From Girardia tigrina (lineage: Eukaryota): DNA of 64,000 nucleotides. Shown one piece after another: positions 1,610-58,000 of the stretch. Under the pieces are notes generated by a model, which searched no databases, had not been told where the DNA came from, and was given only the letters and a program-made list of their open reading frames with translations. The stretch spans positions 80,793-144,792 of the forward strand of contig MQRK01207995.1 of NCBI GenBank assembly GCA_001938485.1, read 5' to 3'. Numbering within the stretch: position 1 is the stretch's first letter; each line of letters starts with the position of its first letter. A program made the translations under genes and the position numbers.

Positions 1610-4600
1610 CTGAATTTATGAAACAAATCAAAGTTTTTCTTTCTTTTGAATTACTTAGAAAAAGTAAAATGAATATCAATTAGATTCAGAAATTTATTAA
1701 GTGTATCAAGATTTTTATTTGGAGATTAACAATAAATGAAATTCATTCATTAAAAAAATATATTTAACTACGTAACCGGATGTTTTATCACCGGACGATT
1801 CATCACATTTTTATTTTTCTAGTGGACGATTCACCACCGGATGTTTCATTACCGGCCGATTAATCACACTTTAAATGAAATTATAATAATTTTTTATTAA
1901 ATAATTCACCATACACTAAATAAAATTTTATAAATTAAAAGTAATCACATTTTTATTTTTGCCGAATGATTTTTTTATTAAACAATTCATCATATTTTAA
2001 ATGAAATTTTACAAATTAAAGCCTTCAGTCATTGCTCTTATGCCGGTTAATAATTTTATATATCCATCAATCATCCATCAATGTTGACTTTTCTTCAGGG
2101 AATAATCAATGAAATGGCTATGCAGACTGGAAGTTTTTATTGGCCGCAGCAGGAAGTCATAGAGGACCAAAGAAACAATATGTAATACTTTAAGAGCAGA
2201 TCAGGAGTGCAGTTGAAAGTTGCATGAGAACAAGTCGTTTGATGTTTTTAAGTTATACTGCTAATAAATATTGTAATTCTTATATTCTTGTAATATAAGT
2301 ATATTTATATATATTTTATCTTAATTCATTAGTCATAATTTTAATTCAGTATTGGTCAATCAGTGATAAGATGTGTCTTAAAAATAGTTTGTTGTGAAAG
2401 TTATCGAATTTAGTACGAATTATCGTTAAAATAATTGTTTTTATTAATTTCAAAATTAAAGCAGGTTTGATGAATCATCCGCGAGAAAAATAAAAAAAGA
2501 GATGATTCATCCGATGGTAAAAAGTCCTAGAATCTTAACTATAATATACTTTGAGGGACCAACCGTCATCTTCAGGTGACGGAATAATAATTTAATTCAT
2601 CTATAAATAAATGTAAAAATAATGCTTATGTAATCGTTTACATGAACTTAGGCTCATAAAAAATTCTCAATCAGTTGGTTGAGACTGCCTATTTAACATT
2701 GATTTTAAGGCAAGGTTACCTAAATAACAAGACTTTATGCGACAATCTCTCCCAATAAGAGCAATTTTGCAGAACATAAGAAAATATGTAAATGTGATAT
2801 TAATAAATTTGAGATTCTGTGTTAGCATTTCGATAGTTATCGGGAGAGGAGATGGTTTAATTTTAACAAGAGCAAAGGTATGTATTACTTTGAAATTTAA
2901 GAAAATGATTATTAAAACTAAGTCTACCTGAAGCTCGTTAAAGAGTTTTTGATACTCGCTAAATGAAGCAACATTGCGCAATTGATCAAATGGTGAAAGA
3001 TCTGTCTTCATCGAATTTATCAGATCAACAGTTGCCTGATACTGACGATCAAACCCCATCTTTTCGGTAATAATTTGAGCAAGTGAATCTATTTGAGACT
3101 AAAATATAACACAATAATTATGTAAATATTAATAATAACAATAATAATAATATAATGTTTGTAATGACATAACTGTTCTCAAAATATAATAATATTACAC
3201 TAAGATGATGTCACGTCTCATCATATCATCTGAGTTCGAATTAAAGTGATTTTATATTTAATGAAATCACCTGAATATGCAATTGTAATATCAGATTGCA
3301 TTGAATGAACTGATCCAAGGATTTATTTTATAATATTGCTTCAATATAAAAGGAATAATTATTTCGTTACGTTCAGTTATTGAACCATGCTTGCGTTTAA
3401 ATAGATTTTATTATGAAATTTCTGTTCTTTACAATTTTAGCAGAATTCGAGAAAGATTCAACAAATCTCTTTCCTAAATCTCGGGAATTCTAGGTCAGTG
3501 ATGATGGTTCACCATCTCAAAGTTTGATTCAAAAACAAAAACAACTGCTCAGACATGGTCAAGTATCTCATCAGCAATCTTCCTTCTGAAATCCTCCAGA
3601 ATTTCGACTCCAACGCTGCGAAATGCCTCAATTCTTTAAGGCAATATAAAGAATTGCAAATATTGATTTTTAATTCTTCTAGCCGATCACAATTCGATTT
3701 ATTTAGCAAATATTTCCAAGCTCAAACATCGGGTAATTTTACAGTCTCATAATTTATTTCAAAAACTATTTCGGAATTAAACTCATTTTAACCTAACAGT
3801 CATTCAAATTCAGAACTCGTGAAGCAATTATTTCTAGTCACTAAGCTAGTTCACATTTGTCCATATTATCCGGCTCCAATGAATCCCAGCTTTTTGATTT
3901 GGCCACAATTGCTGATCGTGTTCTTCAAAAATCAACAAAACAAATGTTCCACCGACCCTCAGGTTGCCACGAGAATCGGACGGAGGCAGCAGGGTTACGC
4001 AGTGAACTCTTTCCGATTTGATTGTGCTGGGCCCATTAATTGAGAGTGCCGTCGAATCCCAGACATGCGGTAATCGAGCTGTCTATTCGGCAGATCAATC
4101 GATCTAGGTTGGTATAAGCCGGCCGTTCGATATCGAGATTCTGGCCGCAGATATCGTAAATCGCTTCATTGTCCACCACAAACGCACAATCGAGTGTTCG
4201 AGAGTCGTATGAGTCATCAAGACCAAATCGTATAATTCAACGACTACAGTAGCGATCTGCGGAGCCGGATAAACGGCGAATTCGAGTTTCGACCTCCTTT
4301 CGCAACCGACACAATTTGAAAAGCCCTTTATAAGTCTGTAATTCATATTTTTCTTCTTTTCAAAAAATCAAAAAAAAACAATTGAAAACACGAAATCAAT
4401 CCACTCAAATTCAAAATCAATAATCCATCAATTTTTCCAGAAAATGTTTTCAGTTAATTTAATTTGTAAAATAAAACAAATTTCAAGATCGAAAAACTTT
4501 CACCTTTTTCAATGAATTTTTTACCTTAAAAATATAAAACAATTTTTTTGAATCGATATAACCGTCATAATAAAATTTCAATGAAAACAATTGTAAAATT

Positions 4601-5369
4601 GACGATGGAAAAATTTCGGTTTCGTTTTTCAATAATTATTCGATTGGATTATGATTCCAATCGACCGATTTCAGATATTGATTTAATAAGTATTTTTTTA
4701 GGAGATTGAATTTTTCTTTTCTCGATGATATAAATAATAATAATAATAATAAATCTAAAATATAATAATTTTAATATTGAATTCTGAACACCAAAGATCC
4801 ACAAATATCCAGACCTATGCTTCACAGTTGAAGAATTCTGCAAATAAGTCAAGTTATTAACGACTTAAAATGTGACTGACAATTTATGTAAACCGGTCAG
4901 ATTCACATTCTCTCATCTGAAAACCCTTCAAAGCGGATGGTGCAGATGTCATTGTCCCGGCTGTATCAGATACCATATAAGCTCTAAGGATGTTGGGACT
5001 GCCTGGTAGATCATGTCAACCTCTGGAAAACTGATCATCTCTAACACAGACGGATGTATCCTATTATGTCATAAATTACTAGAGAAACTGTGAAGATCCG
5101 TTTTGACGTATCCCAATTAAGCAATGATAGTTTCGGTGATATATTGTAAACCAGCATAATCACAAGTTTTAAATCCTTTAGGTTTATAGTTTTTTGTGTG
5201 ACTTTTTCATGTTGGAGTAGGCCTCCTCCCCGCGGCAACCCGCGCTAATGACTCATAGAGCCTGTAAGGAGCCGAGTCGGTAACTTTACTGACACTGTTT
5301 CTATTTTCGTTATTTCCTGTTTGTAAAAGATTTTCAGTGATATCGAATCGCATTATAAATGAATCTCAG

Positions 5370-28800: not shown

Positions 28801-31800
28801 TTATCTTAAATATCTTTTATCCACATAATCTCTTCACTTGTGTATATTATTTTCAGATATATGAATTTTACGGACCTTCTTCAGATTCTACCATTACGAC
28901 AGGGCCATCTATTAAAAGAGAAATGAAGGAGCTTAATCTTGTTCACAAAAAAGTTTAAAAAAAAGTCAAGAAAACATAAAAACGCTACTAAAATAGGAAA
29001 GGATCTTAAGTTATCAGAAAATAAATCGGTGGGATGTACTGAACGGATGATTGAAGTCCAAGAGTGATAATGTCTAAGTGGACAGTTAGAAAGACAAGAA
29101 TAAGTACCAAACGAAGTGAAAAAAATAATATAAATTAAAATAATGTGAGTAAAAGAAATATAATCAAAATACATAATAAATTTAATTACAATAAATCTAT
29201 TTTCTAATATACTTAAAACTCTTACCTCTTGCTTTTCAAGTTTCTCCGCCGGTTTTTCTTCCATATTTATCGAATTATACATCACCACGACGTCGTCCAT
29301 CCAATTACTGAGACTCTTCAAGTGACCCTTAAAGACACCTAAAGATACTTTCTTTTCTTCCAAGAGAAACAGTTTTTCTTTGATCTCACTTTTAAGAATT
29401 ACTTGCGAGACTTCCAGTTTTTCAAGATCAATGAGCATTAATTTATGAATATTAGTTGCCAGTTCCAGTTGGGAGATTTTCTGACAGACCGACCGACACT
29501 CTGCAATACACTTATCTATTTCCAATAAATCATTTGAAAAACTATGATAAAATTCCATTTCATTTTCAAGATTAGAAATAAAAGTTGGCCGATTCAATTT
29601 CGATTTAATTTGATCATGTTTCTCACCAATTATTTTCATTTTTTCTCTGTTTGTTATAAGCATTTCTTGTATTAATCTTCCTTCATCCAACAACTTTTCC
29701 AACCCTTCCTTCATTTCACAAAGTTCTAATTTAACTTTGTTTTTCGTCAAATCCAACTCATTTGCTTCAGTAAAGTTCGATTGAAATGTTTTCTCAAATT
29801 CATCCATTACATTCAATTTGGAGTCTAATTCGAAATCCAAATTTTGAATTTCGTTGAGTTTTTTCTTGAAAAGATCGTCATTAGCATTCCATGGGGACGC
29901 TTTTATCAGCTTTCTTTTATCAGTTATCCAATTTTGAAGGGATTTAAGAAGCTTCTCTCCGTTCTCTATAGACTTGAATTCTTTGGTTTGCAAACCAATT
30001 TCATTATCGAGACTCCAGTTCAATTCTTTTATTCTTTCTGTTACTTCATTGTATTCTTTATTCAATTTGTCTTTTCCTTTCTCATTTGTTTCATTGTAAA
30101 CGACATCTTTGTCATTTTTCAGTCTTTTAACTTCCTTTTCAATATCTAATAACTTAGATTTCAACATTTTTGCTTTCTTTATGGCGTATTTTAGAGATTT
30201 TGTATTAATTTCTTCGACACTTTTTACGTCAACTGAATCCAGTGCCAATTTTATTTCAGAAATTTTGGTATCATAATCTTTATGTTGTTGAAAGATCTTT
30301 CGAATTCGAGGAATATTTTCCAAGTTTATTTTCCCAATTTGTTTGTGTTGTTGGTTGAGTTCGTGTACGTGATGTCGGTACTGGGTTCCCTTTAATTGGG
30401 TGGCGAGATTTTCGAGGTTTCGAATATTTATCTTGAATAATTCCAAATGCTCTTTGTTAGACTAAATTAAATGATTAAAAAATTAATTCTTAAAGGAATA
30501 TGAAAATAGATCAAATTGAAAAATTCAGTCACTTTCAAATTATTAAGAAATTATAAGTATTACATTAATAATTTAATATTGAAAATCACAATAAAAAATA
30601 AATTATCTATTAAAATTCCGACAAAAAACTCGAATTATACTTTAAAAGAATGTCCTTTGATTTTATAACTATTAAAATGTTCTCTGGACTGGTCGACATT
30701 GAGACATCGGGGATCGTATTGCGCCGTTGCCAAGTACGAGTAGTCGCCTGTTGTGGCGACGAACGTCGATTGCGCGATCTGATATTTTCGATAATCGGGA
30801 TCGACGGATTCCCGTTCGAATTCCATCGGCAAACGACCGATAACAAATCGATAAAACCAAGATGGATGATCCTGTTTTTCCGAGAATTTCTTCTCTGGCA
30901 TTTTTACATTTACCCAAACTAGGCGAAATGTCCAAATCGATCAATGTAATCAAGAGAATATTTTAATAAAATATTTACTAAAACCATATTGGATAGAAAT
31001 TAAAATGATTATTAATTATTTAAAAAATATTAATTTGATTTATTTATTAAAAATTGATTTTATAATATGTAAGGAACAAGCAATGTCAGTTTATAATCAT
31101 TAAAGAATATTGTACACAATTTTTCAAAATTTATTGTAATCAATTTCAGCGGATTACTCAGTGCTATAGTTAGACTAAATTAACATTATTTTTTAGAGCT
31201 TCCATATTATATAATCAATCATACCATAAAGGTTTTTTTTTAAAGTGTTTAACAGGAAAGTTGAGTGTGAGGCTTGAATATTAATTTTCGGATTCATCAA
31301 TCTTATTAACACAAAGGTTATTTTTGCCAACGATCCACAGACAAAAAATTGTAAAGATTTTGTTTTCGGATGGAAGATTGTTAAATTATCTATTAAAATT
31401 CCGACAAAAAACTCGAATTATACTTTAAAAGAATGTCCTTTGATTTTATAACTATTAAAATGTTCTCTGGACTGGTCGACATTGAGACATCGGGGATCAT
31501 ATTGCGCCGGATGGAAGATTGTTTACTCCTCCTTTAAACTGGGTATAATTGACAATCAACAGACGCTTGTAGCAAACATGAGAAATGAACTTGATACTTG
31601 GAGATTGATTAACATAAGATGCTGTTACTCTTGTTCTCCTTGTGGACATCAGACATGACAGTAATTAGATTGGCTTAATCATCACTTGTTGATATTTCCC
31701 GACGAATTCTATGATTATCATTTTTATTTTCCGCTTGATTATCCAAAATGTCCGCTCAGATTTTGACTGATTTCTTTTAATAATTTTAAAATTCTTGACA

Positions 31801-34800: not shown

Positions 34801-37800
34801 TTTATAAATCAGTCAGAAGAAATCATTCGTTTTGTGCAACCGATGTGGCTAACGTCGGTATTTCAACATTATTTTGTAAAATCGTAAACAGAACAGGACA
34901 TAGCGCACACTTTGCTTGCGTGGTAGCATAATACCCTTTTTTATAATAAATTCATTTAGATATTTTCGAAAATTCATGAATGATGTTTTATCGTTACATT
35001 TTTTGACAAGTAAAATTATTTTTTCATTTAGTACATTATTACCTAAAAGGTTTTTATTCAAAATTATGCATTGATTCTATTAAGAACACCAATTTAACTT
35101 TTCATATTTTTATTTAAACAACAATTTTGATTGTCCTTAAGACAATCTTTGTCAAAGCTTTCGCACGATGGCATTATAAACTAAATTGATTAATGAATTA
35201 ATTCTTATTATTTTTTAGCAAATGGGGAAATAAATATTTTAATAAACTATTTACTAAAAACTTATTGGATAGAAATTAAAATGATTATTAATTATTTAAA
35301 AAATATTAATTTGATTTATTTATTAAAAATTGTAAAAACTAATTAACTTATTTAAAATTCTAAACACGCTCAAATATTATATTGAGCATGTTTAGATGAC
35401 ATAATAATCCATTGATGACATAATCACTGCTTGTCTATATAAGCAGATTTAAAATTCATTTTTTTCTTGAGACCTGGCGATGACGGTTATACCGTCGAAA
35501 TTAAATCCAATTGAGTGTGTTTAGATGACATAATAATCCATTGATGATATAATCATTGCTTGCCTATATAAGCAGATTTAAAATTTATTTAAAATTGTAA
35601 ACTTATTTGAAATTAAAAATAAATTTAAACATTACATATTTTTAGATAATAATAATTAAAATATTAATCATCCATCTGGGTAGGAGAGACACATTTCCAA
35701 ATCAACATACACATTCAAACACAAAACATCAAACATTCAAAATATTCCTCACAGATTCAAACAAGGGAAAATCCATTTCTTTTGAAACACAGTTGGAAGT
35801 GCTGCGTTGATTAAAAACTAGACAAAGGAAAATTGACATTAAAAATCCTTTGAATTTTTTTTGTAGATATTCATTTCGCCTATTTCAATTATTTAGTTAA
35901 TTCTTTTTCCTATAAAATTTTATAATTATTATAATTGTTTTTTAATTAAATTATTTTATATCAAAATAAGTTATGATTTTAAATTAAATATTTTCAATTG
36001 TGCTTTTATTTATTATTTATTTTATTTTTTTTTAATTTTTAAAGTAAATTTGGATTTTCTAAATATGTTATTTGGCGAAATGAAATTTTAACTAACTCCT
36101 TATAGTGTTTATTACTGAATCATATTTTAAAGATATAATTAAAGTCAAGTATTATAAAAAAATATTTCAGATAAAAGATCTTTACTGTTCCTCCATCTGT
36201 CAGTTCAAGAACACAAAGAATACATTTTTTCAACACGGATTTTTGTGAAAACATAAAATTTAAATACTGCATTTGTCGTCTTTGTATAACCCCTTATGTT
36301 ACGAACAAAGGGTATGAATATCCAAATAAAATGTATGAGTTGATTCACTCGACAAAAAAATAAATAAATTGTTTTATTTTAGTTTCTACATCAAAATACA
36401 AGATTCTTCATTTCCTGGTAATTTCCTTCCAATATGTAAAATTTAGTTAAAGTTACTTTGAAATACATATAAAAACCAAAATGTTTAAAATATTCATATT
36501 CATATAAATTTATTTAAATCAAGAACATGAGCAAATTTAAGTCGGATATAATTTATCATTTATTTTCTATTGGTAAGTTTTTACATTCATTATTCTGCAG
36601 GACTGAACAATTTGTGGGTCAAAATATCGAAACGATAAATCATAGTTCTCAGCGTTAATTATATTAATCTTCTAACAACCAGTGAAATCTCTAGCGAGCC
36701 CATGCCAACTTTGCGGTTTAATATTTTCGTTAAAGTATAACTTTTAGTGCTTAGTGATAAACAGTTTTATAAGTCACACTCTGATTTAGTAACTCGAAGA
36801 TTTCATAAAGTTTCTGCTTCCTAAGTTATAAAATGTGATATATATGAAGGCTCAAAGTTGGTTTAGGGTCGCTAACGAACCCGCTGTAGTTAGACGGTTA
36901 ATTAAACAAAAAAACATCTGTTTATTTCAAAAATATTGTTACATAAAATTGAAAAATTCAACTTACAATACACAAATTGTATTTTAGCTCTTTGTCATGG
37001 GCGTTTTCAGATCTGTTTGATTCCTCTTCAACCGATTTTTCCAACTGATATAAAACGTCTCGACTCTCTGACAATGTGTCATTCCATTCTGTTAGATTTC
37101 CATCACAAAATTTCCATTCTTCTTCAATTATTGAAAGCTGTTTATTCAACTGTTGAACATTCATTTGTATGGTATTTGTAATGGAACTTATGTCTTCTGG
37201 AAATATCCTATTATCGAAAATTGATTCAGCTACATTTAGACAACTGTTTTGATGTGCAAGAGTTTCTTCAATGCATCTTTCGAGATTCTTAAACAAAAGA
37301 TTTATATTTAGAATTTCTTAATAATTATGTATTACACAAAATTAGTTTAATTTATTATCAATTTAATTTTACAATATTTTTTTAAATGCAGAAAGAGCCA
37401 AAATTCAATGTACAAAGTTAAAAATTAATGCTTTGCAAAAAAATGTTTATTTTAAAAGATCTTTACAATTATATTTATTAAAATAATAACTTACAGATGT
37501 ATAAAATGCTATTGGTAAATATATCACGGTAGTGGTCTGACAATAACCCTCGTTTAACTATACCCGTTAAAACTTTAGGTCAACTGAAGTTAATACCGTA
37601 TTTTCCGGTAGATAACGCGCAGTTTTATAAGATTTATAATCCATTTTGATGTATAGATAACGCGCATAGCAGGCATGGTTATATACCTAAGAGGTGTACA
37701 TCATTATCACCAGTACAGGATTCACATGTTCATATTTTGACAAAATTTAACATTTTTGTATAGATAACGCGCGCTTTATCTACCGGAAAATACGGTAATT

Positions 37801-40800
37801 TGATTTGCTTTTAGTTCACATTTTATTAATGAGCTATTATTTGTTAACGGAATCGTTTCCAGCAGAGGTTACATTAAAGTGTTGTGTACTTTTTTCTTAC
37901 TTGTTTTAATAAACAAGGGTTCCAATGAAAGGCAACATTTAACATCTATGAATAATAGTGCCCCTTATTATTTTACTCTTCCAGTGCGCCTGTAAATTAA
38001 CTGTATCCTCCCTGATAAGTGAATTGGTCCTGTAGACCCCATGTTTCATAACAAATTTCATTTTCTTGTTGTTTTCAGTCTGCTTATATTATATTGTTTT
38101 TCATAACTTGAATAGATAGCAACAAATTAACAAAAAATTAGTGAGTGACCGAATGATGACGATTGATTCGTCAAAATATATTGTCTTACAAATATATTTT
38201 TAAATGAATCAGTTTTAGCCGTTTAGTGTTAACCTCATACATGTGGTCTCAGTTGTGTTTCACAGCATGTATGAGTAGTAGAGCATCCCGCGTGCCTGGT
38301 CTTGTAATCAATTTCTTTTGCAAAAATGGCAAAAATAATTTTTTGCTGTGGATAGATAAATAAAACACACGGAAAACCAAGTTCCGCACAATTAAAGAAA
38401 ATATAATTCGGGTCCAGGGCAATAATCTTCTCAAGTAAAAGTTTTCAAATAGAATTTTTTTGTCAGAATTTTACGCAATATTTTAATTTTTTAGAACACT
38501 TTATTTTTAATTTAAGGATTTATAAACTATTTCTTCTATTTTTTTAATTCGACATTAAAATATTTGTTAGTCATTACGGAAGGAGATGTTCCAAAACGGA
38601 AATCCTTTTAATAATTGAAAACTAAACGTATCTATTATTTATTCGTTAATCTTTCAAATTCATTCATGCTCATTAGCAATGGTAAATTTAGTTTTCATAA
38701 GGTATTTTACCAATAAAAGGATCAACATAAAATCAAAAAACTATAGTTAAAAATACTATTATAAAAGTTTTAATGTTTAAATTAATTTAATTTGCATTTA
38801 AAACATAAATATCTTGCAATTAATATTGTTCGGGAACTCCGAATTTTCAGTTTTTTTTCCATTTTTAGATCTTAAAAAGTTTTTTCGATCAAATTTTCAC
38901 ATAATTACGTTTTTGAATGAAAATAATTTTTGATTTGGTATTATTAACACTTTAACGGTAGATCTTACACAGTTAAACTTAACCAGGGATCGATATTATT
39001 CCATTCTTTTTATTAACTTACTTACCACAGATATATACATGTGTGTATCCATGGAATTTAGAAACTATATTTGAAGGATTTTTACTCAATCGATTTTCTT
39101 CAAACTTTGCACACTTATTCATTCTCTATGACAAATAAATGATGATGTGAAAATTTGATCAAAAAAACTTTTTAAGATCTAAAAATGGAAAAAAAACTGA
39201 AAATTCGGAGTTCCCGAACAATATTAATTGCAAGATATCTATTTATAAATTATAATTAGTTCATATTAATTTTTATTATGTTTTTTTAATTAAAATTTTT
39301 TAAATGTTAAATTTTTTAAATTATAAAAACTTTGTTGGCAAAGTAGAGTTCTGTTAGCATAAAGAATGGATATAAAAAATTTAATTTTTTGATTTACTAG
39401 TTTTAATTATAAGTTTGGAATCGTCCAGAAAATGAAGTACATAGAGTGTTACCGCTCAATAGCTGCAGGTGATAATATCATGCATGTGTTGTGTGATCGA
39501 CCTCTAACAGTTGTTCCGGCTATCATACACCTGCTGAGTGAGCGCCCATTTAAGTGTTAATATTAATGTAATTCTTGAATAGATAGCAACAAAATAACAA
39601 AAATTATTTATTAAAATTATCCTTATCTTTCATTTAAACAATAAAAATCCTAATTAATTAAATAAAATCTACCTTTGATGTTTTTTCAAGGTGCAAAAGA
39701 TAATTATTATCAATCGCGTCATGAGAATGACTTCCAACTTTGAAATGGTCGAGTTTTACTTTCGTTTCTCGTTTCAAATTATAGAGCTCTTCCATCACAT
39801 TTTCGTGAGTTTTGAGATTTTCTCTCAATTCGGCTTTATTTAGACCAATTCTTTGTCGAAATTCTTGAAGAGTCGTACAGATATCGTCCTTCATCTTCTT
39901 AACGGATAAGTCTTTGATGTCACTATCCATTTCAATCAAATTTTGTATATCTACGTTATTATGCTTCTCAATTTCCTAAAAAAATTTTTTTCATAATATA
40001 TGAAAAATTATTTTCTTAAATTAAAATTTCAAAATTGACTTGGATTTTGATTATCGATGTGAGAAATACTGTAGCATAACTCAAGTACTCATTTAAGAAG
40101 CAAAAGAAAGAAGAAATTATTGTCTACAAAAAAGACTGCCATAAAAGTGTATATGACCCAGTGAATGGTCCGCATTGTTATAAAAAAAGTTTTGAAGGGA
40201 TATACAGGGTGCGGCAGCTATTTGAGAACAAAATGACATAAAGTTCAAAAAATGAATATACAACAGAAAAATAACATTTATTACAATTTAAAATTTTACA
40301 TATATTAACACGTANNNNNNNNNNNNNNNNNNNNNNNNNNNNNNNNNNNNNNNNNNNNNNNNNNNNNNNNNNNNNNNNNNNNNNNNNNNNNNNNNNNNNN
40401 NNNNNNNNNNNNNNNNNNNNNNNNNNNNNNNNNNNNNNNNNNNNNNNNNNNNNNNNNNNNNNNNNNNNNNNNNNNNNNNNNNNNNNNNNNNNNNNNNNNN
40501 NNNNNNNNNNNNNNNNNNNNNNNNNNNNNNNNNNNNNNNNNNNNNNNNNNNNNNNNNNNNNNNNNNNNNNNNNNNNNNNNNNNNNNNNNNNNNNNNNNNN
40601 NNNNNNNNNNNNNNNNNNNNNNNNNNNNNNNNNNNNNNNNNNNNNNNNNNNNNNNNNNNNNNNNNNNNNNNNNNNNNNNNNNNNNNNNNNNNNNNNNNNN
40701 NNNNNNNNNNNNNNNNNNNNNNNNNNNNNNNNNNNNNNNNNNNNNNNNNNNNNNNNNNNNNNNNNNNNNNNNNNNNNNNNNNNNNNNNNNNNNNNNNNNN

Positions 40801-43091: not shown

Positions 43092-46000
43092 AAATGCATC
43101 AAATATAAAATAAAAGGTTTTCAATTAAATATTATTAAAATAAAGTATTTTAAATTAAATATTATTTTATTAAATATTTAAAATTAAATATAATACTGTA
43201 GCATAGGTTAATTAACCTTTGTCGGTGTAGTAAGAACTTTTAAGCCGTGTTTCTGGGTCACTATGACCCAGAAACACGAACAAGGGTTAAATTTTAGAAT
43301 TGAAGAATTTAATAACTTAAAATAAAAATCAAAATTAATATTTTTTATTTTAAAATTATCAGAATATTATAGGATAAATAAGAGATTAGTTAAACAATAG
43401 AAATTGGCGAAATTATCATAAGTTAAAGAAAAGAACTTAAAATTTGTTTAAATTTGTGTGTAGTAAAAATCATTAGTTGTGCTATTCTGAATTCAAATAT
43501 TGATATAACTAACATATTGGGGTAATGTAAATATAAACTTTTTTTTGTTGATTTCGTTTGTTTATTTTCAACTATAGTAAAAATATTGTGAATTTTGTTT
43601 GTGTTAATATGAAAATATTTGTCATTTTATTTTATGTGATGCGTGCCTTGTTTCTATTATTTATATATATTATTTATTAAAATAAAACTTTAATTTATAT
43701 GATATTTATTTATTTTATTAAAATTATTATTGTTATTATTATCTTCGTCACGCACTATGCACTCTTGTTACGCATAGTGCGTCCTCATTTTGCGTGGCCA
43801 CACATATTTTATTTCTTAAGCCACGCATATTCCTTTGTTGAACGCGCATCACCGTACGCATTCAAAGCCTTGCCACGCACAATTTCTTTCTCAGTGCTCC
43901 ACTTTGTGTGACCACGCGCAAAATTATCTTTCTTACGCGTACTTCGCGATTTTGCTTGTTTTGTTACGCGACTACGTTAAGCCACGCGATTTTACGGATA
44001 GTATAAAAAACTCAATAAAAACAGCTCAAGACGTATTAGTTATATTTTCTCATAGGTAAACGACATTTCTTTTTTCTTAAAACGTATTAGTTGTATTTTC
44101 TCACAGCTTGCTTAGTAGCCAACTTCTACTTCGATTGATCCGTGATAGACTTTGAATTTATTCGACGACAATTTCCTAACTCCAATTATTTGTGATAAAA
44201 CCTCGGATCCTGATTTGACCGTGTGGAGACATTCGACTGATATTTCGAGACAGAGATTCCTTTTTCGGTGAAAGGTTATGCATAAATTTTTCTTAAGATA
44301 ATTTCTTTTAAAATTAATATATTTTAAAATCAATAATTCTTGTAATTATATTAAATTAATAATCTTTATCTATAAAATTCAAACTCTTGGTAACTGGAGA
44401 ACGGTGTTTCCCAGTTCCATAATATTTTTACATTATACACAGGGATATTGTTATATTTTTATTTTCAACAAATTGTAATTTGTAAAAATTTTTATAAACA
44501 TTTTAATAAATATTTTTAAAAGAAGTCTCACGTTGTTTATTCATTTATTCTATTGATTGATTTATAAATTCCAATTTATATAAATCGATTGTCAGGAGAC
44601 CTATTTATTTCTCATTTTGTTACAAGGTTTGGGAAATATAAAATTGACCCTTGTACGTAACAAACACTAATAAAATTATTTGCATTTGTACGCTAAGTTG
44701 ATGCTAAAGGAACTTTTAGAAAGGCAACTAAATATTTTAACTTATTTTCATCGTTCTTGAAATTTGATTTTTTTTGGTTACCTCAATGAACATTCTGTGT
44801 GGTTACGTCTATGGTTACGTATAAATACTTTAAAATATGCTGGGTTAGATGAATTATTAGTTTTGCATCTTAATCTTAAAGGTGATTAATGAGTAAAGTT
44901 TAAAATATGTTTCCATCAAGTATTATTCTCGGTTTAACTATTATTCATTTTATCCAATTTTCCTTGTTCGGGATTCAATTATTTTACTTATTGATATTAC
45001 AAATTAATTAATTATCTACATAAAAGTGAAAAAAAACCTTTTTGTGATTCTGATTGCGTTTTTTTGAATTTGTGGGTTTATATGAAAAGATTGGAAAAAA
45101 ACTATTATTTGTAAAACTATTATTATTAAAATTATTTTTTATTAAGAAATTAATTGGATTATGTGAAAAAGATGAATTTGTTTTATTAGATTAAATGAGA
45201 TTAAAGATGAAAATTTGAAAATAAAATCGATTCATTTGCCTTATTTTTTCTTTTGGAGATTTTGATTTCCACAAATTGATATTAACAAGAAATATTAATG
45301 GAGGAAGTCGAGTTGCCTTATTTGTTATTAAATTGGCTTCGAGGTGGTGCTGAAGAAATGCAATTGTCGGTCCTCGAACAACTGTGTCTGGCACTCTTGC
45401 AATACGAGACATTTTTTGTGTCAAGATTTCGATATTTCATTTGCGCTTCCTCACGGAATGATCAATCGATTGGTCAATGCCAAAGGATCATTAATTGCCA
45501 TTTGTATGAGATTGGAGAATCCCAATATGAATAATTCCATTAGTCGGATCAAATTAAAATGGGCCCAGCATATCGAGAAAGGTTCCCTGCGCAACCCTGT
45601 TACCTCAGTCCGATTCTCGGGGCAACCTGAGTGTCGGGCGGAACAGGGGTAACTACAAACATATTTCTAAAAATTATCAAAATAATAATTTAAATATTTT
45701 TAGCGGCATAAATTATTTTATAAAAAATTATATATTTATAAGTTATTCGATATTCTGTAAATAGATTTTCTTTTATTTTTTTCGATTATTAATATCAATT
45801 TTCGTAAATATATTTACCTCGATTTCTTTTAAATTTTCTTTCTTCATTTCAGCATTTATCATTTTATTCGAAGAGTAATTGAGTAATCTGTTTTTGTTGT
45901 TCAGGAACTTATTCTCAATAAGAGATACGACTTCTCTTTGCTCGTTGGCTCTTTTAGCATCCATTTCTAGTCTCTCTTTTTGTTTGAAGATCTCCGAAAC

Positions 46001-49000
46001 AAGAGATCGAAAGTTATGTTGAAGATGTTCTGCGTCTCTTTGGTGATTCCTCTCCTGAATCTCTGAAGGTGGAAGTTCAAATTGATTGAAGATATGAGCC
46101 TGTATTATCAGATCTTCTATTATCTTTTCTCCATTATCAATCGAAGAAATTAAATTATTTAATGTTTCTAATTCTGATTCGATATTTCTTTCACCAACTT
46201 CAGAAGATTGGGTCGCTTTTATTTTAGCTTCTGCTTCATTTATCCATCGATCATGATCTTCCTTGGCAGCCTTAAACTTTTCTATCATTTTGTCATAAAC
46301 ACTAACCTTTATTGAATCTACTGTATCAAGAAAGTGTACCGTTTTTTCTTTTAACTGGATAGATTTTTGCATCAACTTCTGAATATCTTCATCACTCGTT
46401 TGACTAATCAAAACCTTTGAAGTTTTTTCACAGTTTTCGATTTTATTAATCAAATCCTTCAGTTCTGTCAAACAAAGTCTAACATTTTGAAGATGAAATG
46501 TATCTTCTTTAGGATCTTCTAGATTTTCCTTTTGAAGACTTTCAATAATTCTTTCCAAATTGTTGGATGCATTCTGCAAATCTTTGGATAAAGTTTCTTT
46601 ACCGTCTTTCAAAGTTCGAATTTTTTCTTTCACTGTATTCATCAATTCTTCGGCATTTTCAAAACATTTTATTGTATTGTTGAGTTGAATTGGAAGATTC
46701 TTTGGGTTGAAATGATGATATGAGTCTTTCAACAATTTACTCACTTTTATATGACCCTCCTGAATTATTTCTAATTTGTTTTTTATTCTTTCCATTTCAT
46801 TTTCAATATAAGGGAGAGACATATTCTCATTGTTAAGTTTCTCTAAATCACTCAAACAATCGTACGTTTGCTTTTCCAAAAATGCTACTCCAGCCTCTAG
46901 TTCCTCAAGTTTTTGCATTTCGACATTAAAAGATTGTTCTTTTTCTCTCATCGGTGTTTGATATTGGGATAATTCTTTTTTAATTTTATCATTATTTGTA
47001 ATAATCGCACTATAAGACATCTCTTCAAATAATCCATCGTATTCTTGTATATTCTCTATACATTGGTCCACGATTTCCAAGCGTCTATTTGCATCTTCAA
47101 CATCAGACTGAACATTTTCCAACCACTCTTTTAAGTAACCTTTCATTTCTCCGGAAGTTTGAAAGACTTTATTTGCCTTAAATTTTTTAATTTTCTTCAT
47201 TATATTTGAAATATAAAGCCACTGTTCTTCGATGTCATTAACCTTTTCATAAATTCGGTTGAAACCATTTCTTTTTTGAGATAAATTTGTTCTTAAATTA
47301 TTCATATCATTAACAGTTTGCGCCACGCATTCTAATGGGACTTTTAGTTTAACACTTTTTTCTTTTGATAATTCGTCAATCATTTCGTTTAAAGATTGTA
47401 AATCTTGTTCTAAGTTGTCAACATTCTTCTCTATGGAATTCAATTCTTTTTGGACGGAATTCAAACCTGGAACTGTGAAGTATTTCATGGATATTGTTTC
47501 GAGTCTTTTTACATTTTTGCCAATATTTTCATCGACTAATTTTCTTTTCTTTTCGAAACTTTTCCAATTTTCATTGACCTTTGAAATGGATTTTGTTTTT
47601 TGGTTTAATTTTTCTTTGGAGTCCGCAATTTCATGATCGAGTTGGTTAAATAAATCTTGTAAATTGACCGGTTTGAAATTTATTTTATCCACAAGAGGAA
47701 AAAATCTTTTCCTTCCTTTCATCATTTTTTTCATACTTTCAAGTTTATTTTTGAAATTGTTTAAATCACTTTGAATGTTCTTCATATTATCTTCATTAGC
47801 AATGTTTAGCAGATCATTGACTTCCTCCAATCCTTCTTTCAGTTCCAAAATGTCATCATAGGTTTTCCAACTCCATTTATTAAAATCGAACATTTCATCA
47901 ATCGTTTGTTCAATAAAGAGTAATTTACTTGCTAAATCTTTATTTTTTTTATAACTTCTCACTAACCTTTCGTCTTTTGTCATGTCATTTAAGGAAATCA
48001 TCTTGTTACTTATATCTTCGATCTTTAAGCTTAACACCATACTCGTGTTATTTTTAATATTCTTCAATTGTTCATTGACGGATTCACCATCTCCAAACAC
48101 AATATTCATGTCCTTTATTATATTATTGACATTTTCAACGTCCTCATCAATAGATTGTAACTCATCCAGAGTGGCATCCAGTACTTCTTTTTTGGACGTC
48201 TCCGTGGCCATCATTTCCTGGCATTTATCCGAACTTCTTTTCAATTCATTACTTAACATTTTCAGTTGACTTCTTAATTTTTCCACGACTGTTGAATTAA
48301 ATATTGAGTTTTGATTTCCGATTTCGAAATTTCTTTTCTCGCATTTATCCAACATTTCATTTATATTTTCTTTGATTTTGTTAATTGATTGAATTTTATT
48401 TTCAAATGTCTCTAGATTGTTTGCCGAAACTTTATCAAGAGATTTGATAATGTTTTTAGATGCCATTTCAATATTTTTGACGAATTCCTCGTTTTCAACC
48501 ATAAATTCCATACCACATTTTGCGTAGATGTATTCCTCTTCGAATATACCTTTGAGGGATTTCGATCTATTTAATAACTTCTCAAACTGATAATTCACTT
48601 TTTCCACAGGCGGACGAAGAGTTTTGATATTAGTTTCCAATGTCTCATATATACTGTTTTGGCATTGTTCAAGTTTATTTTGGATGCGTCTCAGTTTGGT
48701 CAAGGGTACCTCGTTCTCCCAGTCTGCAATACTCAACTTTATAGATCTAGTTTCCGATAACTCTTTTTCTATATCATCCAACTCATTTTTATACTTACGC
48801 TCCCTTTCATTTATATTTGCCAAACTTTCTAAATAAGTTTCAACTTTATTTTCAAGAGAAGTTATATTATCGATTATTTTATCAACATCTTTATCGGTAT
48901 TTTTAAATAATTCATCAATTATTTTTCTAATAGTCTCTTGGTCAGAACTACTTTTTCTTAGCAAATCTTTGATAATCTTATCTTTCGTCGCTTTACGCTC

Positions 49001-52000
49001 TTTGACTTCCTCTTTCAGTTGTCCTAACTCATTCAAAAGACTTCCATTAATTTTCGATTGTAGTTCGGTTTGAATATTTTCAATTGCTGATACTTTGTCT
49101 GACACAAAATCTTCAAAATCTTTTGCCATTTCAGTCGAGTTGTTTAAAATTTCATTTTTGACTTTTAAATCTTGAATTTTTTTCTCAACATTCTCTTTAC
49201 ACTCATCAATAATGGTCTTCAAGGTATCTTTTTTGTTCTTAAATTCTGCTTCTTTTGTGGCACTAAACTTTGTATGAGACCTTTCTACAGCACTGCTAAG
49301 AGCTGTAAATTTTTCTTCAATGTTATCATCAATCCGAGAAAGAATGTTTTCTAGTTTTGATATAGAATCTTCAAATTTGATGTCGTCTAGCTTTTCATTA
49401 TTTAAAATGCTCAATTCCTTGTTGATATCATTTAGTTCAGTTAGGAGAGTTTCAGAATAGTTTTCTATTGCAAGTAAAACTTCTTTTGTTTCTTGCAACT
49501 TTTCTAATTTATTCTTCATAATTTGATTGATCATATTCCACGTATTTTCGAGATCAACGGACATTGGAGTGATGATACTTTGTGTTTCAGACTGATTTTG
49601 TAAATTCTTTCCTTCTTCGATTTCCATCAAAATATTCGGAGCTTCATTTTCCAAACAAGATAAAAGTTTTTGTTCTTCTTGATAAATGTCTTCTATTTCT
49701 AAAATTTCTTCTTCGTTTATTTGATCCAGCTGCATCTTTAATTCCAAAAGTTTTTTGTTTCGCTTTGCTAAACCTTCATTGATTTCCATTGACTTTGCAA
49801 CCATCGGCGCTGAAGGAAAATAAATCTTACAAAAACTAACAAAACAAAATGAGATTTCATAATTTATGTAGAGATATTATTAAAATTATACATAAAAATA
49901 ATGTGAAACTATAGATTAAAATATAATTTTTGCCGAATGTATAAGTGATTAGAAATTCCTTTTTCTTATAATAATTGAAAAATTAAGATGAATTATTAGT
50001 AGCAGACATTAAAACTTTTATTATACCACAAAAAATGTTTAAATCTAATATTTAAACAAATTTTTTTTGAGAAACTATTTGTTTTATAAATCTTAAACCG
50101 ATATAGATAAAAATACATATAAATATTCATATTTGATTTTTTTATTACTTCTATAATCACTTTTAAATCGTTTCACATAAAAATTATACACTTTTTTTTT
50201 ACTTTTTATATAATATTAAAACTATCAAAAAAATTTTATTAGCAATTTAATTGATCTTCTTAATTTTAGTAATTTTATTTTTTCGAATGTTACATATTTA
50301 ATTATATAAAAATTTTAATTTGTACATATTTAATATAACCTTCTTTCAAAAATTTTCCTAACATTTTTAATTTCTAACAATTATTATTATCATATTTTAC
50401 GGGGCAATGTAGCCCCAGTTTAAGCCTAAGGACCAATAAGATAATGCACAGTCAGACAAGCGTTTACGTCTAAAAAACAATGAGTAATTTCATCTTTACC
50501 GATCGCTGTCAAATAGTTCCTTTAGCTCATTCCGTATTAGTAAAATCTGCCTCCCTATGGATACTATGTGAAGTCAGTGTTAACTTGTTTCTCCCCCAGA
50601 ATGTGCTAATATTTGACAGTGATTCGTGATTATTTTAATGGCGTTTTCATATTTCTAAGGTTGTGAGAGAATCGGTATTTCGGACTTTAAATAAAAAATC
50701 CTAGACGTCAAATTTCAGAATGTTCTCAGAAATTAAGTATAAGCATATATTTATTATGAAATGTTTTCCAAAAATTAAGAAAACATTAGAATTTGTTAAT
50801 TTCTGAAAAATAAGGACAAATTTAAAACAGGGATTTTGAAAAGCTTTTAGAAAGATTTTAAAAATATTGATAATGAAAATAATTAGATAAATAGTACAAC
50901 ACATTTCGAAACATTACTTTCAATTTCACAAGGGCCTTTTTATATTTATCAATCAGAAAGTGTAATACTACAAATGGCAAAGGTAAACAAGGAAAAGATT
51001 TAAAAACTTGACAATTAGATGTTCTTGGAACTTCCTCTGAATTATTATTATGAGTTACTTCAGACATCCAAATTTTATTAGAATACAAAAAAATGTTTAA
51101 ATCTAATATTTAAACAAACTTATTCTTTTGAGAACAATTTGTTTTATAAAACAAAAATACTTATAATATTAATATTTTATTTTATTTTAATTTTATAAAT
51201 CAATTTTAAATTATGATAACATTTTAAAATATTTAATCGTTTGGTTTCATTTTATTAATTTTTAAAATCATTACACATTTAAAAATTATTCATTTTAATT
51301 TGTATATTACATTTTCGGCTATTTCAAAAATTCTTAATATTTAACAGCTTAATTAGATCTCATTAATTTTAAAATTTTCTTTTTAAACTTTACATATTTA
51401 AATATATCTAAATTTTAATTTGGACATATTTAGTGTAAGCTTATTTCAAAAATTTTCCAAACATTTTTTTTAAATTCCTAACATTGACCACTAAATTTTT
51501 CCTTAGCCATTCAAATTCTCCAACGTTATTCAAAAAAAGTAACATTTTTTCTCTTCATAACTGTGAGGAATGTTTTGAATTGTGTGTTGATATTGTGCAT
51601 GTTGTATGTTGATTAGGATTGTGCCTCTCCTACACAGATGGATGATTGGTATCTTCTTTGATTCTTACTAATTAAAAATAATTTAATTTAATTTTAAAGT
51701 AAAAAGATTTTAAATAATTTTTGAATGTATTATTTATTTTTTTAATCTAATTTAAAATTTTAATATACTAATTTAATATGTTCTTTTTTTAAAAATGTTT
51801 AGATTTAATTTCGACCAATTAGATTCTTTATAATTAATAATTTTTATTAACAGATTTTCATTTATAATAATTAGTTTGAACTCAGAAAAATATTGATCAA
51901 GAGAGATGTCAAATAGTGAATGCGCTTGTGATAATAATAAATGTTGCAAAACTCATATTGATGTTGTTAATAATAACCAGACGTTTTGAAATGGGATCAG

Positions 52001-55000
52001 CAAGTAAGTGCAAAGTCGAAATTTTCTTCCAGTCCAAACGCACCAAATTTTATGAAAATATTTGTAAGATAGGAAAACTTTGTACTCAAATTTTCAATAT
52101 ATTCACAAAATAGTATTTTTTTAATCCAAATAAATGTGAGAAACAAAACAGAAGTTATATGCGACCTAACTCATACATGAAAATGGATCACTTCCATCGT
52201 TCCATATTGTATATCTCTTATAATCGTATTTAATAATCAAAATTTTTGTACCTTTTTTCGAAACCATATCAATTTTTGGAGCCACTTTTTCATATTTTGA
52301 TAATGAATTCTGAATTTGATTTTTTTCTCTTCCTAATTGTAACGAAGGCGTTGCGTAAATTAAATCAGATAACATTTTGTTAAGAGTTTTTTGTTCAGTC
52401 ATGTATTTATCCCTGAGACTATAAAGTCTTTCGAATTCTTCCAATGTTTTGCCATATTCTTCTGCATTCAGACTTTGAAAATCAATGTTGTCAGAACCAC
52501 ATTCCTCATTTGCACCTTCTTCGGGCACTTTTAGTTGTGACGACAAATGTTCTATTGATGTTACCCAATCCGTGACCTTTGCTAATCTAAATAAAATATC
52601 GAGTGTTATCTAGAATGTTATTAAATAATTATTAAAACTGAAAATATCAATTTTAAAATTGTCAATGGTTTGATAAATTGATATGTAAGGATGATATTTT
52701 TATCAGCGTAGACCAGTGCGAAAGAAATTGCATCAACTTTGAATATTGAACAAATATTTATATTATAACGTACTTTTAAAAGAAAAAACACTACTTCACT
52801 ACGAATCTGTTAGACATGAACCCCAACAGATACCTGAAAATGATTTTAAGATGAGTTAATGTTTATGAAATGTAGATCTCGCTTTATAAGTTTTTAAAAT
52901 CACTTCCAAGAGTTGGAGGCATATTTCGAGAATATGTCGTAAAATGATTTCGTAAGAGCTGGAAACACACTGCATGGTTTCGGACTTGGTTGTAACAAAT
53001 GTTGATTCATAAAATTTGAAAGGCAATGACCAATTTGATGAACTTAAGTTATAGCAGGAATTTTATTCCTAATGAAGTGAAAAGCACTTTTGAATGTCTA
53101 TAATTTATTGCACATCTGACAAATTCTTTTAAAAATGTTGCAATGTCTTACTAGATTCCTTTTTAAAAAACTAGTCACCGTAGGGACTGCATCTTTAAGA
53201 TTTTAAAAACTGAAACTGATTAATACTGACCTCAGATCAAAAAGGCATCGACAAAGATTGTGTGGACTAGCTATTTTGTTCATAGAAGAAATCATTAATC
53301 CCCGTTAGACCACAAGGACATAATTGAAGACTTCGAAAACACAAAGACAACGATAGTAATTTTTCAGCTGTGGTTTCCTCATGAAGTTTGAAGTATAGTA
53401 AAGTCCATTATTACCACGAATTCTCAAAGAACTTAAAAAAATTTGAAGTATAAATCCTTGCTACTAACCTTAATAATTTTGCTACTTCGACATCGAAAAT
53501 TTTACAGACATGTTATGCAGACCGAAAAAAGTCTAAAATAATAATATATCTAATGTCAATATGCTATCATCCCAGATACGCTTCATTATGACTTTAGTTA
53601 TTATAAGGAGTTAGTTACATCTTTGAAATTCGCCAGATAATTTAATTATATAATAGAATTATGATTTCTGTCTGTCATTCTGTTTGTGTGAAGTTCCCGG
53701 AGTTCAGTAAAACAAATTTAATTATTTTTATTAAATAATTTCCGTAGTGCCCGACACATTTAAGTCATTATTTCGGATCTGCCCTGAAGTATATGAATTT
53801 TGATATGGATTTGGGGAGAAATCGGTCACAATCCCGGATTCGATTCCATACTGCCCCGATATAGGAATATTCTGAGGCTGATTTGAGATATTCTTTCCAT
53901 AATGCCCCAACATAGAAATATCATCATTTCGGATCTGCTCCGGCATACATCGATTTCTATAGAGATTTGGGGGGGCGGAATTTCCTGCCGTTGTTTAGAC
54001 GAATCACTTTAATCATCGGGAACTTCACACAGACTAATGACAAGTACTCGCGTATATTGTGTTCATTTGAAATGTTTTGTGTTATTGAATGCATTATACG
54101 TGACATGTAATTCGTTACGACAAGATGTGATTTGATAAATTATATTTGAAATTTTTTGTTATTTTGTTTATCAAGTCAATTTTTTTAAGTTTTGTTGCAT
54201 CAATTATGTTGTACCAGCCCCGTACCGTGCCACCTTTTGTGGGTCCCAGACTCTTTCTAAGGGGGCTAGTAATTCTCGTGTAATAAATGAATACTTTTTG
54301 AAAACACACAGTCTGAATGTTTAAATGTCGAATGATCAAGGAAAACAAAATAAATCTTTTATCTAGACATTATTTTGCGTCATTATTGCATATATGAAAT
54401 GATTTTTGCACATTTTTCAGAAATAAAGACAAAAATCAATTACAGTAGCTGCATATTTTATTTTGTTTGCACGATGGACAATTGAACATAGAGAGTACAG
54501 ACAATCAGACAGATTTTCTATAATTTAGGATGAGTGTAGTACTATACAATAGAAATAATACAGCAATTACATACGAAAGTAAGAAATTGTATGCATGAGA
54601 TATTAATGTGACTCAAAATAACTGTAGTCGACGATTTTTCATTTCATTAAACCGTCGAAGAAAGTCATCAGATTTGATGTTATTAGTGATGCCACTTTCA
54701 AACGAGAGCAATACAAGGTTTGCTTTACTAGAATAGGTCATAGATGAACGAAAGGGAGTTAGAACACGAGATAAAGTACTAAAAATCGCCTCACATGAGT
54801 GAGTGCCGAAGCTGCAAGACGATACACAGATGGAAATGCCTCTCGGTAAGAGTACAGTTCTTTCACTAACTGATGAACGTTTGTCACAGTAGTTGTCCTC
54901 TTCAAAAGAAATGTCTTTGCAGTTTCAAACTCATGATGGGTTTTGCTTACCTTCACTTCACACAAATTCGCTAATGTCTTTAGTTCTTCAATATTTAAAA

Positions 55001-58000
55001 ACTTAACCATGCAAGAGACTTTTAAAAGTTTTTGTTACTGACACTGAAGCACTTTGTTAATTCCAGGAGAGTCATCTCAACGACTTCGTAATACATTTCG
55101 CAATATGCACATCTGATAGACAAGTCCTGGTGTTCTGTCTGTCCCACAGATCCCAATACAACGAAATTCTCCAATTGTGAATTCATCTTAGTTCGTCTTC
55201 TTTTCAGTTTCGGTTCCATATCAATATGACCTTTAAATTTCTCAAAAAGAACTTGGAATTCCTCTTCATTACGGAGGCTGCTAATGCGCTCTATGACGGC
55301 ATCCATACCATCACATGTAGGTGACATAGATTGATGACATAGTAGCAGGGATAGTATCACTAGATGAAGTGACTGAAGTCACAGAATTCTTCGGAATGAC
55401 TTCGAAGAAATTCATGATGCTCTTGTGTGTCGAAATATTGTATTATAATAACATTAATGTCACAAGGTAGGATCAATTACAATGACACTATGCACTGTAT
55501 AGTTTGCTGTAAGATTAAGGTCAGAATAAGGACAGATATAGACAGCAAATGTGTGCTTCTGTATGCGTGTTTATTTGGATGTGGATGATTCCCTCATACC
55601 ACGTCAATCCATGTGTGCACACTTTCCTTCTCTCTCACCCACGCTACCTACATTACTCTCTGTCACCCTATAGGTCTGTTTTTCAGTTGTTCTCTATACA
55701 TTTTGCCTGTTGTGTGTATAGGTATGTATGTATGTGTGTTAAGGGGTAGAAAATATTTTTTCATATATTTTCTATTCTCAAGTGGACATTTCATTATCAA
55801 ATGGACATTTGAGTAAGTATGTTTGTTAAATTAACATTTTGATTGGTTAAATTGTATATTTCTTTCAATTTTAGATATGGATTTACTATCAAATAGACTT
55901 CTTATATAATTAAATGGACCTCACTGTACTACTACACTATGTATATGATATATGAATAAATATGACTCCCTATTTCTTTTTCATTTGTCCTTTTTACTCT
56001 GGGGGGTAGACTTGCGTTTGGGGGGCCGGGCCCTCTTGCCCCCCCCCCGACGGTACGGGCCTGTGTTGTACTGATTACAATATCCAGAAAAAGCATGATG
56101 AATAAGGATATTGTGCAAGGTCTAACGAATTTAGTTAACAAAAAAAATCGCCAGACCTGGCGAAACGGGTTCACCATAGTGTATTTAGTAGTTCAAATCT
56201 AAAATATTAAATATTTGACAAAAACCGCAAATTACTTAAGATTTAATATTATTTACAAATTAATTACAATGTATATCAAAAATTAAAAAATATTTATTAT
56301 TTAATGTTACGACAATTAAAAGATTTGAATAAATTACAATTTCAAAAAGTTGTAGAATAGGATAAATTAAAAATATATAATTAAAATTAGGATAAAATTT
56401 AGGATAATAATTTAAACGAAATTAATTGAGGAGTTTACGAAAAAAATTAATTAACACAAGTTTTTGAAAATGTATTTTGTTATATTAATGATTTTTTAGT
56501 GTTAAATAGGAATTTGTATTCTGAAATGTCACATAACGACAATAGCATAAACGACTAGCAGTTATAAAACCATCAAATTCTTTTGTACTCTGGAGATGTT
56601 TAATATTAATTACACGATGTTTTCACGTTGACCTCTCTGAAATTAATCCCATATCAATATAAGAAATTAGAAATTATATATTTGAGAACATTACTTATTT
56701 CATATTCTTCTAAGTATAACTTAAGACGTCATCAGTTGGAGTATTATTGCAGATTTTGCTTCTTTAGGCTTTTCTTGAGACTAATTAATTTAAGAGTGAC
56801 TGTTCGATTCACATTCGGGGGGCCCATATGGAAGTTAACCCGACAAATAATATTTGGAAAAAATCGTTTAAATGATGGGGCTGATTTAACTCCGAAAGCA
56901 ATTGAGACGAAAACACAGAAATTAAAGCCGAAACCAATCAACCAAAAATCAATTCAATCAATAGCGGTTCGTCGTAAAATTNNNNNNNNNNNNNNNNNNN
57001 NNNNNNNNNNNNNNNNNNNNNNNNNNNNNNNNNNNNNNNNNNNNNNNNNNNNNNNNNNNNNNNNNNNNNNNNNNNNNNNNNNNNNNNNNNNNNNNNNNNN
57101 AGAAACCAATCGGAAATGAATATATCAAAAGAAAACGAAAATTTGTGAAAAGAAATTGGAATTTGTTGATATACGAAAAAAGACGAAGAATTTTATCCAA
57201 TAAATTTTTTGGGGAATATGTTTGGAGATATAGAAGAGAGGGAAACTTTTGTACTTTCCTGTTCTGAGAGTTCAATCGATAACATCCTACTGGGAATGTG
57301 ATTTTTTTACTGTTTTATAGATGTTTATGACTTCAAAAAAAATTGATTTTGTAATTTTGATTTTCCGAGGGGTATTCGGTTGTTTTTTGTTGTCGAGGTG
57401 TTGTTAAAATTGATTGGTGAAAGTTTCGATTTTGTTTGAATCGAATAAATAAATAAATTTTTATAGCGCGAAATTTGTTTTGTTTGGTGAATGAATGAAT
57501 GAAATTGACAATTAAATCGATTCACTACGATTCCGAACGAAAATCGATGGCCGATGAATATTATCCGTTGTCACAAAGTGTTGTCGGGAATTTATTGGAT
57601 AAATTGTACGAAAAACGTAAATCGGTCGCGATCGATATCGAAAAAGTCGTCAAGCAATTGCGGAGCCAAGGCAAGAACGAGGAGATCGAATTGATCATTA
57701 AACATTGCGGAGAGACATTTTTCAATTCGAGCAATTGTCACTACCACAAGGGCGACACGATTGGGTTGACCGCTGTCGCCATCGCTCTCGGCAAACAAGC
57801 GGACGAGTACTGCAGTCTTATTATTTGTCCGTCCATCAAACTTCTCCACGATTCCGATGGCCGAGTTCGGTATTACGCATATGAAAGTCTCTACAATTGC
57901 ATTAAGGTTTTAAACGGTAATGTTATGCCGCATTTAAGCCCCCCGCGTCCCGCAACCCGCCCACCATCGCCAACGCGCCGCAGCCACCAAGCTGCGCTCG

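Follow-up and report, generated by a model that had tools for sequence, protein, structure and literature searches.

The window, a 64,000-nt stretch of a Girardia tigrina contig, has a GC content of 29% and carries exons of a single gene, very large and encoded on the minus strand, that has spectrin repeats. These exons were searched one by one, and look-ups of the host gene were blank. The intron adjoining a large coiled-coil exon contains, antisense to the host gene, a promoter-like leader, a coding fragment, a short linker, and a module that ends in a hairpin (Table 1). We take the coding fragment to resemble the N-terminus of HECTD1, apparently with an internal deletion; this name found no support in Pfam, NCBIfam, or PDB (all blank), and the fragment is called the HECT cargo below. 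A second copy of the module, on the other strand, follows an internal fragment of alpha-tubulin with one frameshift near 4195.

Table 1. Features of the two chimeric loci and of the host gene in the window
Feature	Position	Strand	Remarks
AT-rich 5′UTR/promoter-like leader of the HECT cargo	45094..45297	+	Left boundary undefined
Cargo 1 (HECT), ATG-started N-terminal coding fragment	45298..45547	+	94–99% identical in four ENA contigs
A/T-rich linker	45548..45558	+	AATTA directly 5′ of the tRNA match, also in the tubulin copy
Antisense to tRNA-iMet nt 36 to 24 (anticodon, 5′ strand of anticodon stem)	45559..45571	+	
Purine-rich spacer	45572..45580	+	9 nt; bulges from the predicted tRNA duplex
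Antisense to tRNA-iMet nt 23 to 1 (D arm, 5′ acceptor strand)	45581..45601	+	
GC-rich hairpin with G-U pairs	45602..45645	+	GCAA tetraloop 45622–45625; ACA right end 45643–45645
Host gene, large coiled-coil exon	45776..49804	−	Context
Module copy 2	3945..4036	−	tRNA match 4036–4024, spacer 4023–4008, tRNA match 4007–3988
Module copy 2, hairpin and ACA end	3987–3945	−	
Cargo 2, internal alpha-tubulin fragment	4039..4310	−	Residues ~159–249; PDB E 5e-21 and 8e-12
Companion host exon with spectrin repeats	7733–11851		

The module and its copies

In a self-BLAST of the window, 3945–4037 aligned with the opposite strand of 45558–45645 (94 nt, 82% identity, E 6e-16), and the local alignment of the two copies scored 99, against a maximum of 25 among 2,000 shuffles. 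This alignment bears out the sequence-only reading, which had described one module on opposite strands at about these coordinates. A covariance model recovered only 45559–45645 (+) and 4036–3945 (−) in the whole window, with no second copy near either the HECT or the tubulin locus. The module is 87–92 nt long, and each window copy is preceded at a distance of 2–11 nt by a gene fragment in sense orientation.

The ORF running from the HECT fragment into the module matched proteins of four ENA metagenome assemblies, and ENA contigs L005–L008 hold the same leader, cargo, linker, and module as the window HECT copy. The known sample comprises six copies with two types of cargo, four of them on contigs of 513–679 nt. 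A cargo is present in all six; four of these were retrieved with a cargo-containing query, and only the two window copies are unbiased as to the presence of cargo. The shared mechanism that had been proposed is supported by two unrelated cargos having one module, one junction point, and one orientation in common, and by the presence of a gene fragment in every copy found.

The right end is GGAACA in five copies and GGAATA in the sixth (L007), and the right flanks of all six are unrelated, with G, T, A, A, G, and C as their first bases. Since similarity stops after GGAACA and the six flanks are unrelated, the right end of the module is a true terminus. Of the extent originally assigned to the module, the common GGAACA end holds; the last 8 nt (45646–45653, GGGGTAAC) lie beyond the point where similarity stops and therefore belong to the flank, so that the module is 45559–45645. 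No poly(A) follows the right end in the copies found, and no direct repeat adjoins either window locus.

Exact-pattern scans of the viral, JGI, and GTDB collections and BLAST against phage sequences did not find the module, and a gapped scan of JGI returned only chance matches and tRNA-iMet genes or pseudogenes. Protein-based scans of the loci were blank. Some sense fragments are in frame with the module (P0168, 124 aa). Other cargos, sought through a second reading frame of the module, yielded no candidates, a result that says little because a called ORF of 43–138 aa was required.

Further gene fragments were seen in the window. One, corresponding to VAC14 residues 1–130 (57547–57936, +), has 130 codons with no intron, stop, or frameshift and an AT-rich leader of its own; a C-rich tract with 78% GC and no Rfam match (57937–58030) stands in the place of the module. 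It has one close relative, a UniParc-only protein (78%), all others being at or below 51%. In a quick tree, which placed them in an animal clade including flatworms, the UniParc protein had a zero-length branch and the window VAC14 a branch of 0.27; the former therefore looks like the parent, and the latter like a decayed duplicate. Top hits in cestodes, the base composition, and the type of accession suggest a planarian host, probably Schmidtea or a relative. CpG-rich, gene-like intronic fragments at 53780–54030 and 56790–56980 also lack the module. Since VAC14 and other fragments are without it, the module does not explain all gene fragments. About 60 nt of the HECT and VAC14 leaders (45200–45260 and 57470–57525) share a weak similarity ending AAATCGATTCA (z 3.7), possibly a common promoter or UTR motif.

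The window also contains a 128-nt direct repeat (30599–30726 and 31382–31509, 99%), which overlaps a CpG-rich minus-strand ORF of 88 codons (30668–30931) with no match in Pfam, NCBIfam, or PDB; a 19-nt repeat (31367, 31508) brackets its second copy. Short GC-rich structured islands are present at 5181–5302 (no Rfam match) and 55968–56103, and self-BLAST revealed other small dispersed or inverted repeats (35576–35754, 51561–51726, 59451–59542; 38735–39301; 50003–51483). The stretches 16546–17376, 24258–24638, and 54700–55700 are presumably decayed mariner-like transposase fragments and a hAT-like fragment.

Initiator tRNA complementarity and the terminal hairpin

The sequence-only reading had recognized the module as a shared unit and had left out its identity: the first half is antisense to the initiator tRNA, tRNA-iMet. 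The complementarity is exact over nt 36–24, passes a bulge of 9–16 nt (a spacer of about 16 nt in the tubulin copy), and continues over nt 23–1 with about 19 of 22 positions. The first block reaches 12/13 in the window HECT copy. About 32 of 36 tRNA positions are matched overall, or about 31 in the tubulin copy, and both families mismatch G9 and A6. The match was first noticed against an oligonucleotide in PMC1797187 and then scored against the tRNA genes of contig L019. Its whole score was reached by 0–3 of 5,000 shuffles; the second block taken by itself was equalled by 0–2 of 5,000 in the ENA copies, by 13 in the HECT copy of the window, and by 131 in the tubulin copy. Module scores were 31.5–34.5, and the best other tile of the window scored 24. 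No tRNA or 5S call was made on the module itself. tRNA-iMet-like copies with insertions of 4–5 nt in the D-loop region were also observed in unrelated eukaryotic contigs (L011 1561–1594, L017 2294–2326, and L019 869–902, the last with a small tRNA-Met array).

In cofolding, the predicted binding energy was −25 to −35 kcal/mol with the half tRNA and −19 to −29 kcal/mol with the whole tRNA; two helices flanked the bulge, and nt 37–40 stayed unpaired. Position 37 of the mature tRNA is modified (t6A37). Likewise, G9 is commonly methylated on its pairing face (m1G9; PMC5066629). A stop before nt 37 and a break at G9 are as expected of a site that binds the mature tRNA; the G9 coincidence is suggestive only, because the chance for one of the two shared mismatches to lie at this position is about 0.06.

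Like the half-tRNA primer binding site (PBS) of hemiviruses (copia, Ty5), the module contains a complement of the tRNA-iMet anticodon stem-loop, with 13 of 13 matches at nt 24–36 in four of six copies. Unlike it, the module has no match at nt 37–40, although the 3′ end of a hemivirus primer pairs at nt 39–40 (PMC1181622), and extends to nt 1; moreover, it follows a cargo instead of an LTR, lies at the end of the element rather than its start, and has no gag-pol next to it. Read on the minus strand, the chimera has the order of a primer and its cDNA, namely tRNA nt 1–36 and then antisense cargo. A tRNA-iMet fragment ending at nt 36 could have primed cDNA on an mRNA in a copia-like manner and have itself been copied into DNA; half-tRNA priming exists in hemiviruses (PMC1181622), and the m1G9 mismatch could be a misreading. 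We nevertheless find such an origin improbable, since the primers of hemiviruses end at nt 40, up to which the match does not extend, since the spacer within the match and the 44 nt of hairpin past nt 1 have no explanation, and since re-amplification including the hairpin is unaccounted for.

The miniature terminal-repeat retrotransposons (TRIMs) Helenus and Cassandra and tRNA-derived SINEs (PMC10886601) resemble the module in being small, non-autonomous, and related to small-RNA sequence. In these elements the tRNA part serves as a Pol III promoter and contains A and B boxes; in the module it runs antisense to the strand of cargo and hairpin, lacks a B box, and has a broken A box (G9 changed). 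A TRIM was rejected because no LTR pair lies near either locus and the tRNA part covers only nt 1–36, and a tRNA-derived SINE because, on the tRNA-sense strand, 44 nt precede the match, which breaks off at nt 36, and neither strand has an A-rich or repeat tail.

The second half of the module folds as RNA in a strand-specific manner, with z-scores of −2.7 to −6.4 for the sense strand and 0 to −2 for the antisense strand. Covariation was absent among the few sequences because divergent copies are lacking. Rfam gave nothing at threshold for the window, the locus, or contig L006 (best 18.7 bits against a threshold of 100). The patterns of HDV-like, twister, hammerhead, 7SL, 5S, and H/ACA RNAs could not be fitted by hand, and a likeness of the hairpin to internal 5S sequence received no model support.

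The mobile HECT family and the tubulin cargo

Over the coding part and module, the HECT chimera is 92–100% identical in the four ENA copies; the homology extends into the leader, at 83–92% near the ATG and 72–76% further upstream. The window copy has a frameshift in a T run near 45413, and three of the four ENA contigs keep the frame. Variants in the ORF comprise 6 synonymous and 17 nonsynonymous changes, against 21% synonymous expected under neutrality; the ORF is therefore without purifying selection, and selection on the chimeric ORF was ruled out. Since junction and right end are common to all copies of the family and the flanks are unrelated, the HECT chimera is a neutrally evolving, dispersed multi-copy mobile unit. 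Contig L008 appears 5′-truncated. Its left flank, positions 1–35, is GC-rich and contains a short hairpin that ends in CTAG and resembles the 3′ end of a Helitron; a nested insertion, genuine 5′ truncation, or chimerism at the contig end may account for it.

These data change two parts of the original interpretation. The HECT copy of the window had been taken for a capture event of its own and is rather one member of a re-amplified family. The identity of about 80% between the window copies had been regarded as a sign of independent events, of which it is no proof, because the tubulin copy alone is about 10–12% decayed and this could explain much of the gap; it is the different cargos that point to separate captures.

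The chimera contigs were assembled at 2–4x coverage, whereas a host exon of the window had no matches when searched, which suggests a high copy number of the chimera. Such coverage, together with the state of the window as a gapped draft, could raise the suspicion of an assembly chimera or of chance. This is very improbable, since four independent samples, which differ in their variants, contain the same chimera and right end, and the match within the window has an E value of 6e-16.

Seven or more A>G changes in the tubulin cargo are unambiguous (residues 161, 163, 164, 186, 203, 228, and 233); G>A occurs three times, C>T four or five times, and T>C not at all, as counted by eye against conserved alpha-tubulin orthologues of other species rather than against the parent gene. 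The A>G excess suggests the pattern that A-to-I editing of a transcript would produce. The skew is absent from the VAC14 fragment and from the HECT variants. Both the HECT and the tubulin cargo are sense coding sequences, intronless over the stretches seen. AAT is common to tubulin codon 249 and the linker. No left end common to both cargos was found within about 0.9 kb. At 4311–4346 (−), a T-rich leader and an ATG in frame with the tubulin fragment are apparently of non-tubulin origin and possibly represent a second captured 5′ end.

The upstream leaders are long, AT-rich, and contain ATCGAT motifs; they might be promoter DNA, which would count against an RNA stage. Together with the one fixed end bearing a hairpin, they would fit a DNA-level capture in which the module is one end of a Helitron-like or otherwise one-ended DNA element that inserted in genes and moved flanking DNA. 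Pack-MULEs and Helitrons are likewise mobile units in which pieces of host genes are dispersed and evolve neutrally. Unlike these, the module has no terminal inverted repeats and shows features pointing to an RNA stage; a Helitron was rejected because the end is AACA instead of CTRR and the next base varies. DNA-level capture is further opposed by the lack of an A/T target rule and of an inverted partner and by the hairpin, which is weak as DNA and, as DNA, not significant in the tubulin copy. It would also leave the tRNA complement, the sense-only coding cargo, and the A>G excess unexplained, and we judge it unlikely.

A possible tRNA-docking end of a retroelement

We give an even chance to a reading in which the module acts in cis as the 3′ terminus of the RNA of an LTR-type retroelement and docks its tRNA primer, with the reverse transcriptase jumping onto mRNAs at the edge of the tRNA duplex. 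The module would then correspond to an LTR end (the end of U3, R, U5, and the terminal CA). Its first half would bind the 5′ half of initiator tRNA-Met in vivo, and the tRNA 3′ end would stay free to prime at a PBS elsewhere and bridge both RNA ends, as at the U3 site of Ty3, where the D arm of tRNAi pairs with U3 (PMC5371799). Reverse transcriptase would copy inward from ACA, through the hairpin and then the tRNA-bound stretch, and at the duplex edge would occasionally switch templates at a short A/U-rich stretch to a co-packaged host mRNA. Gene fragments in sense orientation, attached at a single fixed point, would result. Chimeras that kept the module and gained an upstream promoter-like leader, such as those of the HECT family, could be copied again as non-autonomous elements, presumably through an RNA intermediate and with an LTR-type integrase. 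Re-amplification with a fixed ACA end implies that copying starts at or beyond that end, and priming at the tRNA site alone is thus insufficient.

In the window, no gag or pol was found near the module loci. No canonical PBS follows any right end (best p 0.07), and no target-site duplication, which in TRIMs and solo LTRs has 4–6 bp and surrounds TG...CA, was found for the HECT copy within 1.6 kb, the left ends being undefined and the ENA contigs 513–679 nt long. Since the search yielded neither a partner LTR nor a canonical PBS, and neither a target duplication nor an autonomous element, a LINE-type tail has to be considered. The module would then be the 3′ recognition tail of a non-LTR (R2/NeSL-like) element, inserted by target-primed reverse transcription; the anti-tRNA part would be a relic of a tRNA-iMet gene target taken into the tail, and mRNA fragments would have been added by end-to-end template jumping at the 5′ end of the short tail RNA. 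A fixed 3′ end, a stem-loop a few nucleotides upstream of it, variable or undefined 5′ ends, and the lack of target duplication agree with such a tail, and the 5′-truncated appearance of L008 looks more LINE-like. Moreover, the planarian elements LIN15_SM and LIN25_SM target tRNA genes (PMC4640811), and among R2 elements there are lineages whose 3′ UTR derives from the target, as well as a planarian R2 that is non-specific (PMC5035012). However, the tRNA 3′ half is missing upstream of all six cargos (p 0.2–1.0), for which reason insertion targeted to a tRNA gene was rejected, and an A-rich or repeat tail is absent. A relic also fails to explain the bulge between colinear matched segments and the stop at nt 36. 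We therefore hold a LINE-type tail to be possible but doubtful, and favor the LTR-type end because in it the tRNA complement, the bulge, the halt of the match at nt 36, and the CA end would each have a function.

The closest analogues of the LTR-type end support parts of this scheme. LTR-mediated retrocopies (Tan et al. 2016, PMC5131818) are partial, mostly sense mRNA pieces joined to an element without poly(A), with a recurrent switch site and re-amplified chimeras, features also found here. They differ in that their cargo lies within both LTRs, whereas only a right end of 90 nt was seen here, with the edge of a tRNA-complementary block as the switch site. In HIV-1, a tRNA-gene-like sequence at U3-R is reported to aid strand transfer (PMC6468702). 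Like this sequence and the bipartite PBS of Ty3, the module lies near the RNA 3′ end, as it would be in the proposed element, and could pair with a primer tRNA outside the tRNA 3′ end. Unlike in these systems, two colinear blocks, situated 44 nt from the end, together complement all of the 5′ half (nt 1–36) of tRNA-iMet, and a matching 5′ PBS was not found. By analogy, the module could work like LTR-mediated retroposition with a Ty3-like tRNA dock. As it departs from the features of hemivirus PBSs, TRIMs, tRNA-derived SINEs, tRNA-targeted insertions, and Helitrons, we file it under none of them. The arrangement is undescribed in the literature searched; Repbase lay outside this search and could list it as an unclassified repeat.

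A stronger proposition, which we hold to be a doubtful possibility, is that an RNA module of about 90 nt clamping the 5′ half of the initiator tRNA beside a terminal hairpin suffices for the reverse transcription, insertion, and re-amplification of mRNA fragments. With the same reserve, such a self-sufficient module would need no paired LTRs, inverted repeats, or poly(A) tail. If true, it would define a new class of one-ended, tRNA-docking gene-capture elements that seed introns with pseudogene fragments. The module itself offers a defined sequence handle on the origin of retrocopies in an invertebrate outside the L1 route. A junction fixed at the edge of the tRNA site would predict where and why reverse transcriptase switches templates. 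In a planarian host, a model of stem-cell biology, amplified sense fragments of housekeeping genes would matter for genome annotation, for RNAi off-targets, and as sources of piRNAs.
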